From: Parasitella parasitica NRRL 2501
Taxonomy: Eukaryota; Fungi; Mucoromycota
DNA: 64,000 bases
Direction of reading: 5' to 3'
Assembly (NCBI GenBank): GCA_025201805.1
Contig: MU619309.1
Span: forward strand, 64,657-128,656
Shown here piece by piece: positions 57,299-63,936 of the stretch. The notes below the pieces were generated by a model. That model saw only the letters and a program-made list of their open reading frames with translations, was not told the origin of the DNA and did no database searches. Position 1 is the first letter of the stretch, and each line of letters starts with the position of its first letter. The translations under genes were made by a program, and so were the position numbers.

Positions 57299-60293
57299 AT
57301 GAGCTCTGTCAACGAAAATACGCCCTCCACAAGCTCATCCAACACCAATAGCGAAAGACCTGATAATACGAACGAGACATCAACGCCTTCCCCATCCTCA
57401 TCGGCACCAAATAATGCAGCATTGGATGTCCATGCACTGAAAGAAAGAATTATAGCAACCAACAAGCTTTTCAAATACCTGCAGGATGCAAAGAAAGGCA
57501 AGTCTTTGGCCAAGTTCTTTCTAGATGCGTACTAACCGCACCTTCAACCATAGAACTGTCTACGCGCGAAGCCCAAATTAGCACATTAAAAGCAAACTTG
57601 GGCCTATCAGTCAAGAATTCCCAAGAATCAGATGAGAAATACAACAAAGTAGCAGACCAAGTCAAAGTATTAGAGGATCAACTAAAGGCAAAGTCGTTTC
57701 AAATAGATTCTTTAAAAAACGACCTGAGAAAGCAAGCTGACCTGGCAAAGCGGATGGGGTCCAATGCTGCAGAATTCAGAACCGCAAAGGATCAAGTAGC
57801 AAAGTTAAAGGAAGAGAACCAAAAGTTGACAGAAACCATATCAAAGTTGCAGGCTGAGAAAGACCAGATGGACGAGGAGGCCATGGAAACTAGCATCAAC
57901 CATAATTTGACGATCGAATCACTTCGCGAGGAAATCACAGATCTGCAATCGTCCTTAACGACCGACGATTCAGAATTAGTCTCTTTGCGGCTCCAATTGT
58001 CGGCTGAAAAGAGCAAGGCATCTAAAGCCGCTTTACATATCAAATCACTCGAGCAGAGCTTACAACAGTCTAATGAACAAATCAAAGAGTTGAATGTCCA
58101 GCTACTTGAGAAAGAGCCCCAGCAAGCACCAACATCTGCCACCAATGACAACATGGATAATATAAAACGAATGCATGCGGAGCAAGTGAATAGTCTGAAG
58201 CAACAGATTTCACAATTGGATTCAAAGCTGGAAAGAAAGGCAGCATTACCACCAACAACACAATCAGCAGCAAATCCAACTCTGCTCAAGAAATACCACC
58301 AACTTAAAGGAAAATACCAATTGATGAAAAAGACAAATGTATTTTTGAATCAAGAGCTGCAATCTGCACTATCCAATGCCTCAGAAGACCGAGGGCTTAC
58401 ATCCGACAGTGATCCTGATAGCGCGAGCCATGAGTCTAGCGACGATGCGAATATACCAACACTTGTTGATTTGGAAACCTCACTTCCAGAATCAGCCAAA
58501 ATTCCAACCGCAAATCAGCACAGCTCTACTCTTCCCCGCCCAAAATCTGCTAATGCCAGCAAAGCGCCTCCTGTTTCCCTTGTTCAACACAGAAATCCGT
58601 CCAGAGATCCCCGCCTTGCTCATCAGCCAAATCAACATCAAGAAACAGAGGAACTCGGTCTCCAACAAAAGTCAGGTCTCATTGCTCCACCGCCACAAGG
58701 AACTGCCACAAAGTTACCCAAAAAGCGAAAGAGCTTGCTACTCAAGTTTGTGAATGCCAAAAATCCTTCCAAAGTGCTCGAGAGAGCCAAAGCCCCCACC
58801 GCCTCCAATACAACCGCACTTGCTCTTTCAAAAAAACGCTCGCATAGCTCAATACAAAACGACGATCAGGCCACAGAAAGCGCTTCTAATCAAGTCGACA
58901 GTGCCCCTGCCAATGCTGCTGCTGCTACCACCAGTACCACCGCTAGTACTGCTAGTAGTAGTGCCACTGACGTTCCATCGAAAAGGATTAGAGCAGACTA
59001 CCATTGGAATCATGTTATTGAAGGCATATTCAACAAGAGTCACGGGAAAGTGTTGCCCACAAGGGTAGAGTGCAAAGAAATCACTCTTCATTTGCTGGAT
59101 GAAATCCAAGATTGCTACTCTAGAATCAAGTCTGCTGCTGTGCTTACCGATTCCAGCCTCGTTCCGTTTGGTGCTTCTGACTTGGAACTGCCTAAATCGA
59201 TGGATCATCGTGAAAAAGTGTATGCTTGGTTCCTGGTGTCGTTGTTGAAAGTCGATGTAAGTTGACCAGAATGTGGGAAACAGGGTCGGTTTTTTTGCTC
59301 AGTAGCATTCATAATAGCGACAAGAGTTCAATTCAGTCATGTTCAAGTTGGCGGAAAGTACCAAGAATTGCCCAGTGTCCAAGGCTCCAATAAATAACAA
59401 ACTTGTGTAAGTGTTTTGGTAGTTTTCAAACATCTATCAATCTAACCGTTTTTCTCGATTCCAGCCGTCTGATCAGGTTATTCGCTATAGTTTGTAAGGC
59501 TGAAGACTCGCTTGGCCGGCTTTGTACCCTGGTTTATACATTGCTCAGGATTCCAGCCTTCCAATCAAGTCTCATTCCATCTCTGCTGAACGTAGGCTTT
59601 GTCTGGAAAGAAAGCTTTGCTTTTGTGAGCGCTGATCCTCATTTCGACTCCTTGCACAATACTTTTGTCTCTTGTATCCACCTTGTAAGTTGCCGATCAA
59701 GCTCTACAAAGAATGTAAGTAATCTAGCTTGTGTTTTTTTTTTTTTTTTTGCGATTCCTCGTATTCATGCCCTATTGCCTTAGCTAAAGCAGATGGAAGC
59801 ACAATTGTCAACGCTCTTTAACTGGCCGCCGCCAAAACTCGTTTTAGATTGCATAGAAGACTCGATGAAGATTCTCCAAAGCACCTACTTTAAAGAGCTG
59901 CACGCAAACGACAGGAGCAAATTTGATTTATTGTCGTTCAATTTGATCACGTCCTTTGAATTGGCTCTTGTCGTTTTGGATGACTGGAAACAGACGTATG
60001 ATATATTTATCAGACAAAGGCTGTGGCCATTGTTGAGCATGGAGGTTATTGACGTGGTAGCCATGGAGCTGCTCGGAAAGCTCGCAAGACTAGGCATCTC
60101 TGACGACCCCTTGAAGGCAGACAAGCCTGGAGTTGTAACTCTGCTCGATACTTTTTCGACAATCATTGATTTGGGCAAGGATATCGATCCCAGCGAGAAG
60201 CATTTACAATTTGCCGCTGCAAGGTCCATGGTCGCTGTGGCTGGAAACCATCATCATTACAAAAAGTTTTTGGCTAATGTGCATGGTATTTGA
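57299..60293 (+). CDS. Coiled-coil + low-complexity + helical C-terminal protein, ICE1 (little elongation complex subunit 1)-like; 5 exons, first intron GC-AG
   Basis: Introns 57498-57553, 59257-59317, 59407-59464 and 59714-59783 give one frame. N- and C-terminal motifs resemble metazoan ICE1 (from memory). The gene model is solid; the identity is inferred. Confidence 0.6.
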
Positions 60294-60789
60294 AATAATG
60301 GAATTACATCATCTTGAGATTTTTGGTTTNNNNNNNNNNNNNNNNNNNNNNNNNNNNNNNNNNNAAAAAAAAAGCCTCTGATATCTAATGAAATAAGCAA
60401 CGAAATCTCTTTTATATACCGTACAAATTTTTGCTGGCCATGCCATATCGATGACTCCCGCCTTTATCAATATGTCAAAATGTGGATGGGCCGAGGACAA
60501 TCGAGAATCGTGTAGCTTTCCCCCTATGACAGACTATTCCTATGTATCCCAATGTCTCGGTTGATGATTTATAAATAAATAAAAATAAAAAAGGATTGTA
60601 TCATTGTGGAGCTATAACCAATATTTGTCGGCACTGCTGTATTGACTCTTTGTCATTAAAAGTCTTTGAAAGATTTATTCAAAAAAAAAAAAAGAAAAAA
60701 AAAAATATATAATATATTAGCTGCGAGGTTTTTTTTTTCTTTTTTTTTTGGTTGATTAAACCATTTCTTTTTGTCTTTCAACACTTAAT

Positions 60790-62175
60790 ATGTCGCGCCA
60801 TAGAGCCGTTAGAAATCTTAACATTGACGGTGAATTTCCGAGCTAAAAGTAGGCGTAGAAAGGCAGCTAATCTCTGTTGTAAAATAGATATTCTTGACGA
60901 AAATGAGTATGGAGAGTACGATGAAGATCAAAGTAAATTGCGGCACAACTGTAAAAGGATGAGATACTGACTACCGTTGCTCTAGTCGATGAAACCGAAA
61001 TGTCAACTGAAGATTTAGATAAATTAGACGAAGGATTGGCCTACGTTTATAGTGTTATTGGAGACGACACCATCTTGACTTCGAGAGAAATCAAGGAAGC
61101 TTTGTGGTATTACTATTTTGACAGAGAAGAGACAGTGAATTGGGCACTCGGTAATGCATACTGATTGGGGGACTTTCGAAATTTGATCATTAATAAGCCT
61201 GTATGCAGAGCATATTGCCAAAGAAAAGGCATTGGAGGAGAAGAAAAAGGCTAAAGAAGAAGCCAAGAAAGGTGGGTTCATTAACCAGCATTTTCCAGAG
61301 AGAGAGAGAGAGAGAGGAGAATATAAATACGCACAAGGAAAAAAAAATTTCTTTCCTTTTCTTTCCATTGATCAACACTCCAAAGGTAAGCAGACGTCCT
61401 TGATAAAACGAGTTTGCAATGCTAATTTTCATGCCAAGGATTATTATGGCCGATAATAGTGGCAATAAACAGGCAATGCCTACTCTCTCTAGTCTGTCCA
61501 GCGCGCGTCAGTCAGCATCCTCGACCAACAGTTTAACTCAACTACGACAGAAAATACAGAAACCTACCGCTCCACTTGTTTCTTCGTCTAATGAAACAAA
61601 AAAGCCGCTTTCGTCCTTGCAAACATTAGCACAAAGATCCAATACCAACGCTCGACCCACCCCTTCCCTTGCTTCTCTTGCTGTGAACTCCTCCACAGTA
61701 AAAACATCAAACAGCTTGGCCCATTTGGCCTCCCGTCAAGCAGCTCCCAAACCCACTCCCAGCGCTGCAGGAGGAGGAGGAGGAAGAGGAGGAGGCTCTC
61801 TAACTGATCTTGCATTGAGTAAACAATTATCAAAGCCAACATTGATCCAACCTTCCTGTTTGCCTGCAAAAACCCCTCCAGCTGGACCAAACGCTGATAG
61901 CCCAACTCTAGAGGAATCAGCATCATCGTCGGATGAGGAAGAAGGGCCAGAAGCAATGTACGAAAACCCATTATGCGCAAAACCGTCAGCAGCAGCGCAA
62001 TTCCTGTTCAAGCCTCAACGATTATTACAGTTTGATCCACAGGCAGTATTTCAACAAGCCCGCAATAAGCCCACGTCAATCCACGTATTTGAGTTTAATC
62101 AACCTAGTCCTGATGACATTGTCATTGCTGCCCAAAGCGAACGTAGCGGAAAGCGATCATAATCCTTTATTACCG

Positions 62176-62225
<50 letters not shown>

Positions 62226-63936
62226 ACCAAATAAAACTAACAAAAAAACATTCGCATTTTTAATAGCTGCCGCAGAAAAGAAAGCCGCTGCCACCGCCGC
62301 TTCAGCTAAAGCCAAAGCTAAAGCTGTCAAAGCTCCCAAGGAAGAGGCTGTTGAATTCCTTTCTGATCAAGAAGATATCAGTCAAGAAATGGATGCCATG
62401 GGGCTCGGTAGCAAGACAGCGGCAACCAAGTCTGTTGCAGCAACTGAGCCGTTTGTCAAAGTGCCTGCGTCCAAGCGAGTAAACGTAGCAGAAGAGTACC
62501 AGAAGCGATCTGGCGAGAAGCCCAAGTTAAATCTAGTTGTAATCGGACATGTAGATGCGGGTAAATCGACACTGATGGGGCATTTCTTGTACGACTTGGG
62601 CCAGGTAAACGAACGCACCATGCGCAAATTTGAACGGGAATCGCAAAAAATTGGAAAAGGGTCGTTTGCGTATGCCTGGGTTCTGGACGAAACAGGCGAA
62701 GAACGAGATCGTGGCATTACTATGGACATTGCTACCAACCATTTCGAGACTGAACACCGTCAATTTACATTGCTGGATGCACCTGGCCACCGTGATTTCA
62801 TCCCTAATATGATATCTGGCACTGCACAAGCCGACGCTGCTATTTTAGTTGTAGATGCCTCGACAAACGCTTTTGAGGCTGGCTTTGATGCTGGAGGGCA
62901 GACCAAGGAGCACGCGGTCTTGGCTAGAAGTTTGGGTGTGCAGCAATTGATTGTGGCCATCAACAAGCTGGATATGACAGACTGGTCTCAAGAGCGCTTC
63001 AAGGAGATTGAAGCCAAGCTTGGAGCCTATCTTTATCAAGTTGGGTTCAGGAAATCCAAGGTGGTATTCGTACCTGTGTCTGGGCTGACTGGTGAGAATC
63101 TGGTCAAAAGGAGCCAGATTTCTCAGTTGACAAGCTGGTATAATGGACCTTCGCTGATGGAGCAAATCGATAAATTCGACGCTCCTGTGCGTCTGTTGGA
63201 CAAGCCCTTGCGAATGCGTGTTACTGATTTCTTTAAAGGTGGCATTGGGAGCAGCGGTGGCGTCTCTGTTTCAGGAAACATTGAATCTGGCACTCTTCAA
63301 ATAGGCGAACAGATTATGATTGTGCCTGGCAATGAAGTGGGCTTTGTTAAAAGTAAGTAGACTATGCCGTAGCAATGTAAGGAGGCATGTATTCATTATT
63401 TTGCTTAGCCATGCAAGTCAATGAAGAACCAGCTACCTGGGCTGCTGCAGGCGATTCCGTACTGATGACATTAGTCAATTTGGATATCATGAATCTAAGG
63501 TAAAAAAAAAAAAATCTTCGAGTGGCGAACTTTTGTTCTTGACAGATTCATCCATAGCAATGGATGTGTGCTATGTACAGGTGCAAAGCCTGTTCCGGTG
63601 ACAACGACATTTGAAGCGCAAATTGTAGTATTTGATATTCGTATTCCCATCACGCCTGGGTACCCTATTGTTCTTCACCATGGCAGTTTGGATGAACCAG
63701 CATCGGTTATGAAGCTCGTAGAAATTATAGACAAAGCAACTGGACAAGTGACAAAGAGGAATCCTCGATGCCTGACAAAGGGAATGACAGCAAAGATCCA
63801 GATCAAACTAGCCCAGCGTCCTATTCCGCTAGAAACGTTCAAGGACAATAAGCATTTGGGCCGAATCATGCTGCGTAAAGACGGCGAAACGGTTGCTGCT
63901 GGTGTTGTGAATGAAATTCTAACGTTTGGTTCCTGA
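60790..63936 (+). CDS. HBS1: Hbs1 translational GTPase, 7 exons; long intron 61272-62266
   Basis: [10 protein letters not shown] start, HBS1_N ([12 protein letters not shown]), [44 protein letters not shown] and NKLD. Confidence 0.95.
61297..61316 (+). repeat. (AG)10 microsatellite near the 5' end of the long HBS1 intron
   Basis: Seen directly in the sequence. Confidence 0.95.
61446..62162 (+). CDS. SKI7/HBS1Lv3-like exosome adaptor ORF (238 aa) nested in an HBS1 intron
   Basis: Motifs [12 protein letters not shown] and [16 protein letters not shown], preceded by repeated LxxLA helices in a disordered S/P-rich region. Confidence 0.85.
62181..62220 (+). repeat. (CT)20 microsatellite just upstream of the branch point of the long HBS1 intron
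   Basis: Seen directly in the sequence. Confidence 0.95.

Follow-up and report, generated by a model that had tools for sequence, protein, structure and literature searches.

A SKI7-like gene nested in intron 4 of HBS1, apparently with its own promoter, in Parasitella parasitica and related Mucorales

The 64-kb window of Parasitella parasitica DNA analysed here, meaning the whole stretch of 64,000 nucleotides, holds one HBS1 locus that probably comprises two transcription units: a spliced HBS1 gene and an independently promoted SKI7 gene nested within HBS1 intron 4. Ski7 is an adaptor in RNA decay that most organisms make by splicing HBS1 transcripts differently. The SKI7 start codon and the entire SKI7 ORF lie inside the host intron, and the predicted 238-residue product carries neither the HBS1_N domain nor the GTPase. 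An initial annotation had proposed a nested, Met-initiated Ski7 of this kind, lacking both domains, and comparison of HBS1 loci across relatives strongly supports it. The donor, branch point, introns, ORF and motif sites that it listed were all found in place.

The HBS1 host gene

HBS1 is assembled from seven exons, which together encode a full-length protein of 622 residues.

60790–60829, 60888–60932, 60986–61150 and 61209–61271, + strand: HBS1 exons 1–4, encoding HBS1_N (PF08938, E 6e-13)
61272–62266 (995 nt), + strand: HBS1 intron 4, phase 1, host of SKI7, with donor GTGGGT and acceptor TAG at 62264–62266
62267–63352, 63409–63499 and 63558–63936, + strand: HBS1 exons 5–7, encoding the translational GTPase

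Exons 1–4 sum to 313 nt, that is 104 codons plus 1 nt, and the HBS1 donor at 61272 is therefore phase 1. The equivalent intron measures 871–1221 nt in relatives. A public P. parasitica protein (P0124, 100% identical to the GTPase exon) is annotated with the 61271–62267 join; its model omits HBS1 exons 1 and 2 and begins at an internal Met. The P. parasitica genome holds one SKI7-like ORF and one HBS1 gene, and a search of it for a second copy of either found none.

Upstream of HBS1, a coiled-coil gene with multiple exons occupies positions 57598–60293. An assembly gap (a run of N) at 60330–60364, ~430 nt 5′ of the HBS1 start, leaves the finding unaffected. Among the public gene calls for loci L006, L009, L028 and L029, some divide HBS1 into an N-terminal and a GTPase gene, some join HBS1_N to SKI7 along routes that differ, and in Backusella SKI7 has been overlooked. 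Errors of annotation, in which HBS1 or SKI7 appears as split, fused or missing, affect several Mucorales genomes.

The SKI7 protein

The nested ORF opens with its own methionine, and its recognisable motifs extend over most of its length.

61446–62162, + strand: SKI7 ORF, 238 aa, own start Met, stop codon TAA at 62160–62162, without HBS1_N and without GTPase
61482–61814, + strand: six short repeats of SLxxL type (aa 13–123), candidate SKI-complex (Ski3) binding helices
61977–62006, + strand: Ski7-like motif AKPSxxAxFL (aa 178–187), from homologue alignment and PDB profile search
62088–62123, + strand: Patch-4-like exosome-binding motif FxFxxPSPDDIV (aa 215–226)

At E ≤ 1e-3, 19 homologues of the 238-aa ORF were found, and all of the species-named ones belong to Mucorales; no Pfam family matches the ORF. 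Residues that are invariant among the homologues cluster at the Leu positions of the SLxxL-type repeats, in AKPSxxAxFL and in FxFxxPSPDD. The Patch-4 pattern, as defined in earlier work (PMC7924785, PMC4942675), is present at aa 215–230 in the form F-x-F-x-x-x-S-P-D-D-I-(I/V)-x-x-x-Q and aligns to human HBS1L3 and yeast Ski7, with F215, F217, P220–D224 and Q230 invariant across 20 homologues. Residues 176–188 align with the human Ski7-like motif in chain 9g8m_E.

A PDB profile search with 12 homologues gave human HBS1L3 as the top match, with an E-value of 0.009, and yeast Ski7 as the third, at E 0.22; both C-terminal motifs are aligned in these matches. As these E-values are weak, membership of the Ski7 family is assigned from the motifs together with the position inside HBS1. 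The ORF sits between the HBS1_N and GTPase exons, the location of Ski7/HBS1L3 adaptors, and SKI7 occupies this same position in all ten other HBS1 loci examined. A yeast-type GTPase-like C-terminal domain is absent: the Parasitella ORF stops at 62160–62162, and the stop position is conserved, falling 10–20 residues past the PSPDD motif in all homologues.

The SLxxL repeats are proposed to bind Ski3; their alignment with the human SKI-binding segment is weak and of low complexity, and the E-value of 0.009 applies to the whole chain. In human cells, a fragment containing the SKI-binding and exosome-binding regions is sufficient to bridge both complexes, and the shared human HBS1L N-terminus binds the 40S subunit (PMC11540850). 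Judged from its motifs, the nested 238-aa ORF matches this human minimal SKI–exosome bridge. At 170–260 residues, such proteins would constitute a natural minimal Ski7, useful for asking whether non-stop decay needs HBS1_N or the GTPase.

A metagenome scan returned two distant Patch-4 matches and an incomplete copy from R. arrhizus, and nothing else. Two GC-rich, probably algal HBS1 loci (L021, 343–414; L022, 1201–1269) show Patch-4 followed by a donor directed toward the GTPase exons, a plant-like layout.

Reading frames between HBS1_N and SKI7

The initial annotation had argued that simple alternative splicing of HBS1_N to SKI7 would be out of frame, and the frames bear this out. Donor 61386 is phase 1, like donor 61272, and joining either of them to 61439 shifts the frame and leads to a stop after 136 or 174 residues. 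Read-through from HBS1 exon 4 ends 61 codons into the intron and is not in the frame of the SKI7 ATG.

Eight loci were compared in which the SKI7 ORF is nested and Met-initiated. Six of these offer no in-frame route from the HBS1 donor to any point 5′ of the ATG; the in-frame acceptor or read-through by which alternative splicing would operate is missing from Parasitella and five other loci. Three nested loci have no AG at a distance of at least 40 nt from the donor. In Backusella, the 107-nt gap between donor and ATG is devoid of AG, and a stop lies two codons after the donor. The entire 203-nt gap is open and in frame in M. velutinosus (L006, 4488–4690), unlike in its close relative, Mucor sp. 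(L001), where the acceptor of the leader intron is in frame with the HBS1 donor. From these frames, a fused HBS1_N–Ski7 isoform, perhaps a minor one, is possible in the two Mucor loci.

A conventional alternative terminal exon, in which donor 61272 would be spliced to an acceptor in frame, located within the ORF or immediately 5′ of it, to make an HBS1_N–Ski7 fusion, appears quite unlikely for Parasitella. Such an exon is the ancestral state (as in animals, basidiomycetes and Phycomyces), AGs in the HBS1 frame occur inside the Parasitella ORF (e.g. 61515, 61629 and 61698), in-frame paths exist in the two Mucor loci, and HBS1_N is joined to Ski7 in the NCBI models P0001 and P0002, which come from two species of Mucor. 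However, acceptors inside the ORF would remove the conserved Met and the first motif, no path 5′ of the ATG exists in six of the eight loci, and the ancestral motif near the acceptor has been lost in the clade.

Models P0001 and P0002 were rejected as real fusions, as they resemble gene-predictor output: their junctions disagree and run via poly-T tracts, and the leader intron is retained. An assembly indel hiding an in-frame fusion was also rejected, since the path is absent from the independent assemblies of six species.

Origin of the internal start

The SKI7 start Met is conserved in one clade, comprising Mucor, Choanephora, Benjaminiella, Rhizopus, Pilobolus and Backusella, and Met followed by a PSLxSL motif opens 16 short homologues as well as the Backusella ORF. 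In Phycomyces and in a Lichtheimia-like locus, a phase 1 polypyrimidine-TAG acceptor is followed by the motif KPxYRRPP, with no start Met, and an in-frame route for alternative splicing is present. Annotated proteins of Dichotomocladium and Apophysomyces have HBS1_N fused to the KPxYRRPP motif.

In an HBS1 tree, the Met-type genera Backusella, Pilobolus, Rhizopus, Benjaminiella, Mucor and Parasitella form one clade with support of 100/100; Choanephora and Thamnidium were left out of this tree, and their relatives fall within the Met-type clade. The distribution of the two types fits a single switch from an alternative terminal exon to an internal start. The nested arrangement would thus have a single origin, an alternative terminal exon in the lineage ancestral to Backusella, Pilobolus, Rhizopus, Mucor and Choanephora. 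Within one fungal order, the loci form a graded series from the alternative terminal exon (Phycomyces and the Lichtheimia-like locus), through the nested Met-initiated gene (Parasitella, Mucor and Backusella), to separate genes with reciprocal remnants (Rhizopus arrhizus/delemar).

The predicted SKI7 leader

Between the HBS1 donor and the SKI7 ATG, the Parasitella intron contains candidate elements of an independent 5′ leader.

61322–61329, + strand: TATA-like element TATAAATA, putative internal SKI7 promoter
61330–61385, + strand: putative non-coding first exon of SKI7, pyrimidine-rich, the tract being aligned in four species
61386–61438, + strand: 53-nt 5′-UTR intron of SKI7, with GTAAGC at 61386, GCTAAT at 61421–61426 and AAG at 61436–61438

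An orthologous 53-nt GT-AG intron is present in M. velutinosus, Mucor sp. and Choanephora, and conservation of the same 53-nt length in four species argues that the leader intron is real. The spacer between its acceptor and the ATG measures 7 nt in Parasitella, 4 nt in M. velutinosus, 5 nt in Mucor sp. and 9 nt in Choanephora; the intron is thus free of frame constraint, as would be expected in a 5′ UTR. We infer an internal SKI7 promoter at HBS1 intron 4. The TATA-like element lies 136–140 nt 5′ of the ATG in two Mucor species; overall, it occurs in four of the eight nested loci and was not found in the other four. In locus L008 (3920–3927), TATAAA overlaps the HBS1 donor itself, 80 nt 5′ of the SKI7 ATG.

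Ski7 might instead be made with no internal promoter at all. In that case, transcripts from the HBS1 promoter, ending at an intronic poly(A) site and either retaining the start of the intron or using the 61438 acceptor, would yield Ski7 by reinitiation or internal entry after a truncated HBS1_N. This route requires no new promoter, the TATA-like element is not conserved in half of the loci, and the Parasitella read-through frame stops near the SKI7 ATG. It is nevertheless improbable, because, as is well established, ribosomes reinitiate poorly downstream of an ORF of >100 codons and such an RNA is a likely NMD target, and because the geometry between stop and ATG varies among species. Furthermore, the standalone SKI7 of Rhizopus has no upstream exons, and C. 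albicans answered the same situation with an internal start.

Separation of SKI7 and HBS1 in Rhizopus

The strongest indirect sign that SKI7 has its own promoter is its persistence without HBS1 exons in Rhizopus. The SKI7 gene of R. arrhizus has a predicted leader intron, and the 4 kb upstream of the gene lack HBS1_N; a broken remnant of the HBS1 3′ end, containing a stop, lies 2 kb downstream of it (71% over 87 nt, E 4e-6). Reciprocally, a remnant of SKI7 survives in the HBS1 intron of R. delemar, with its frame shifted (74% over 65 nt, E 4e-6).

L023, 6850–7025: SKI7 remnant in the R. delemar HBS1 intron
L003, 6693–6803: remnant of the HBS1 3′ end in R. arrhizus

The R. arrhizus/delemar lineage underwent a whole-genome duplication. 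The pattern is one of reciprocal loss after duplication, as read from the sequences of two loci that come from the sister species R. arrhizus and R. delemar and not from one assembly. Nested independence would have let SKI7 and HBS1 separate once they were duplicated in this lineage.

An R. stolonifer-like SKI7 is represented by three short Logan contigs (L024–L026), in which neither the 332 nt 5′ of the gene nor the 295 nt 3′ of it contain HBS1 sequence. This gene is possibly a second standalone SKI7; the SKI7 of the R. microsporus-like locus (L007) has kept its nested position. Three runs stop at about the same 3′ position; the contigs, being of unspecified library type, are not counted as transcript evidence.

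The 3′ end of SKI7

The sequence downstream of the SKI7 stop codon runs into the HBS1 splice signals.

62230–62266, + strand: AATAAA at 62230, overlapping the branch-point region (ACTAAC at 62236–62241), then the distal HBS1 acceptor

The hexamer at 62230 had been read as the SKI7 poly(A) signal, an assignment that lacks support: AATAAA does not occur in the equivalent 3′ segment of the seven other nested loci (L001 covered in part), and it was rejected as a conserved signal. The proposal that a weak donor at 62143 could join SKI7 in frame to the GTPase exon fared unevenly. The 62142–62267 join is indeed in frame and free of stops; its use is unsupported, as the donor is weak, has no counterpart in M. 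velutinosus and holds no fixed position elsewhere. Owing to this non-conservation, donor 62143 was rejected as a conserved feature.

A Candida-like isoform, in which an internal transcript spliced from 62143 to the GTPase exon would yield chiefly a Ski7 that continues into the GTPase and is devoid of HBS1_N, is accordingly very improbable, even though the stop-free join would recreate the domain layout of C. albicans and yeast Ski7. Besides the shortcomings of the donor, the stop shortly after PSPDD is common to all homologues, and in R. arrhizus the GTPase exons are no longer present at SKI7.

Complementarity between the intron ends

The two ends of HBS1 intron 4 carry complementary simple repeats that enclose the SKI7 gene.

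61297–61317, + strand: (AG)10 tract lying 5′ of the TATA-like element, 5′ arm of a predicted duplex between the intron ends
62181–62220, + strand: (CT)20 tract within the 3′ UTR of SKI7, 3′ arm of the predicted duplex

The arms are predicted to form a 21-bp helix, which outscores all 628 other windows tested. The (AG)10 and (CT)20 tracts are the sole ones of their kind in the 64-kb window, which contains no (AG)6+ tract besides the former. Complementary intron ends are found in 8 of 11 loci, including the HBS1-only copy, and the arm sequences differ from locus to locus. The helices measure 22 bp in Benjaminiella, 19 bp in Choanephora and 10 bp in the R. microsporus-like locus; that of R. delemar HBS1 consists of 13 non-repetitive bp, and that of the Lichtheimia-like locus spans 12 bp with reversed purine/pyrimidine polarity. 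No helix was found in Backusella or L008, which have the shortest, AG-poor gaps, and that of Phycomyces is weak and not above background. Arm pairs in other loci are as follows.

L009: 3739–3760 and 4789–4810
L023: 6529–6541 and 7148–7160
L007: 126–135 and 965–974
L010: 3928–3939 and 4955–4966
L029: 3860–3878 and 4694–4712

Cognate helices exceed 60 of 60 shuffles in 7 of the 11 loci, and all but one shuffle in an eighth. Cognate pairs also exceed non-cognate pairs (permutation p 1.6e-4; 1e-3 when three microsatellite loci are excluded), with the qualification that the loci are related and these p-values overstate their independence.

The HBS1-only copy of Rhizopus has kept the helix, which suggests that the helix serves the splicing of HBS1. 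As the 5′ arm lies upstream of the TATA-like element in Parasitella and in both Mucor loci, the helix could form only in the long pre-mRNA. A function in splicing may be proposed by analogy with intronic long-range RNA stems, which exclude introns as loops or connect remote splice sites and likewise have complementary boxes close to either end of the intron, a long one (PMC2724269). Compared with those stems, the present helix is sequence-predicted, the sequence of its arms is not conserved while complementarity is kept in each species, and it encloses a whole nested gene. The purine and pyrimidine tracts could instead pair through their composition, or serve as promoter or poly(A) elements. 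In the literature searched, no report of a helix at HBS1/SKI7 intron ends was found. The predicted helix lends itself to a direct test of whether RNA structure guards host splicing around a nested gene.

Proposed expression of the locus

It is proposed that an upstream promoter drives an HBS1 pre-mRNA, from which removal of the whole 995-nt intron would give the 622-aa ribosome-rescue GTPase. Pairing of the intron ends probably loops SKI7 out and would bring the donor to the distal acceptor. An internal promoter, situated just 3′ of the 5′ helix arm, would produce a short mRNA that loses the 53-nt leader intron, is translated from ATG 61446 and has its 3′ end within the final 100 nt of the host intron. 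As this transcript would not contain the 5′ arm, its own 3′ UTR would be left unpaired. The product would be a minimal Ski7 in which Leu-rich helices at the N-terminus serve the SKI complex and motifs at the C-terminus serve the exosome, with neither the 40S-binding N-terminus nor the GTPase.

Relation to known SKI7 systems

In Candida albicans, 5′ RACE has already shown SKI7 to be transcribed from an internal promoter within the HBS1 intron (PMC3597508), and in this respect the initial annotation overrated the degree of surprise. SKI7 and HBS1 of C. albicans likewise form a single locus, with an internal start at an own Met in the HBS1 intron and loss of the proximal acceptor (PMC3597508). 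C. albicans Ski7 continues into the GTPase exon, whereas the Parasitella ORF stops within the intron and shares no coding sequence with HBS1; Parasitella SKI7 also has its own leader intron, unlike that of C. albicans.

In human HBS1L3/HBS1LV3, zebrafish Ski7 and basidiomycete truncated isoforms, the Ski7 exon likewise ends in an HBS1 intron, with no GTPase, and encodes C-terminal Ski7-like and Patch-4 motifs, as in Parasitella (PMC4942675, PMC7924785, PMC3597508). These forms share HBS1_N by splicing, whereas the Parasitella type does without it. The form described here drops both HBS1_N and the GTPase; C. albicans keeps the GTPase, and basidiomycetes and animals keep HBS1_N (PMC3597508). The search found no relevant paper on Ski7 in Mucor or Rhizopus, or on SKI7 as a nested gene, Marshall et al. 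2018 lying outside its scope. According to the abstract of that study, the Ski7 that a species expresses reportedly falls into one of four types. By implication, a type without both domains is already known from it, and this type may be the Mucorales one.

The idea that a clade-wide, fully nested, own-promoter SKI7, hidden by a helix that turns over in sequence and remains complementary, is an undescribed arrangement is offered tentatively, with doubt somewhat outweighing confidence. It needs an internal start and a helix that are both functional, and an arrangement not already covered by Marshall et al. 2018. If true, independence before duplication explains the clean reciprocal split in Rhizopus.

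That split has a parallel in the SKI7 paralogues of Saccharomyces cerevisiae and Schizosaccharomyces, which acquired a new start at the first Ski7 motif and were split from HBS1 after duplication (PMC3597508). Yeast Ski7 retains a GTPase-like domain and acquired its start once duplication had taken place, whereas here the independent start preceded duplication.
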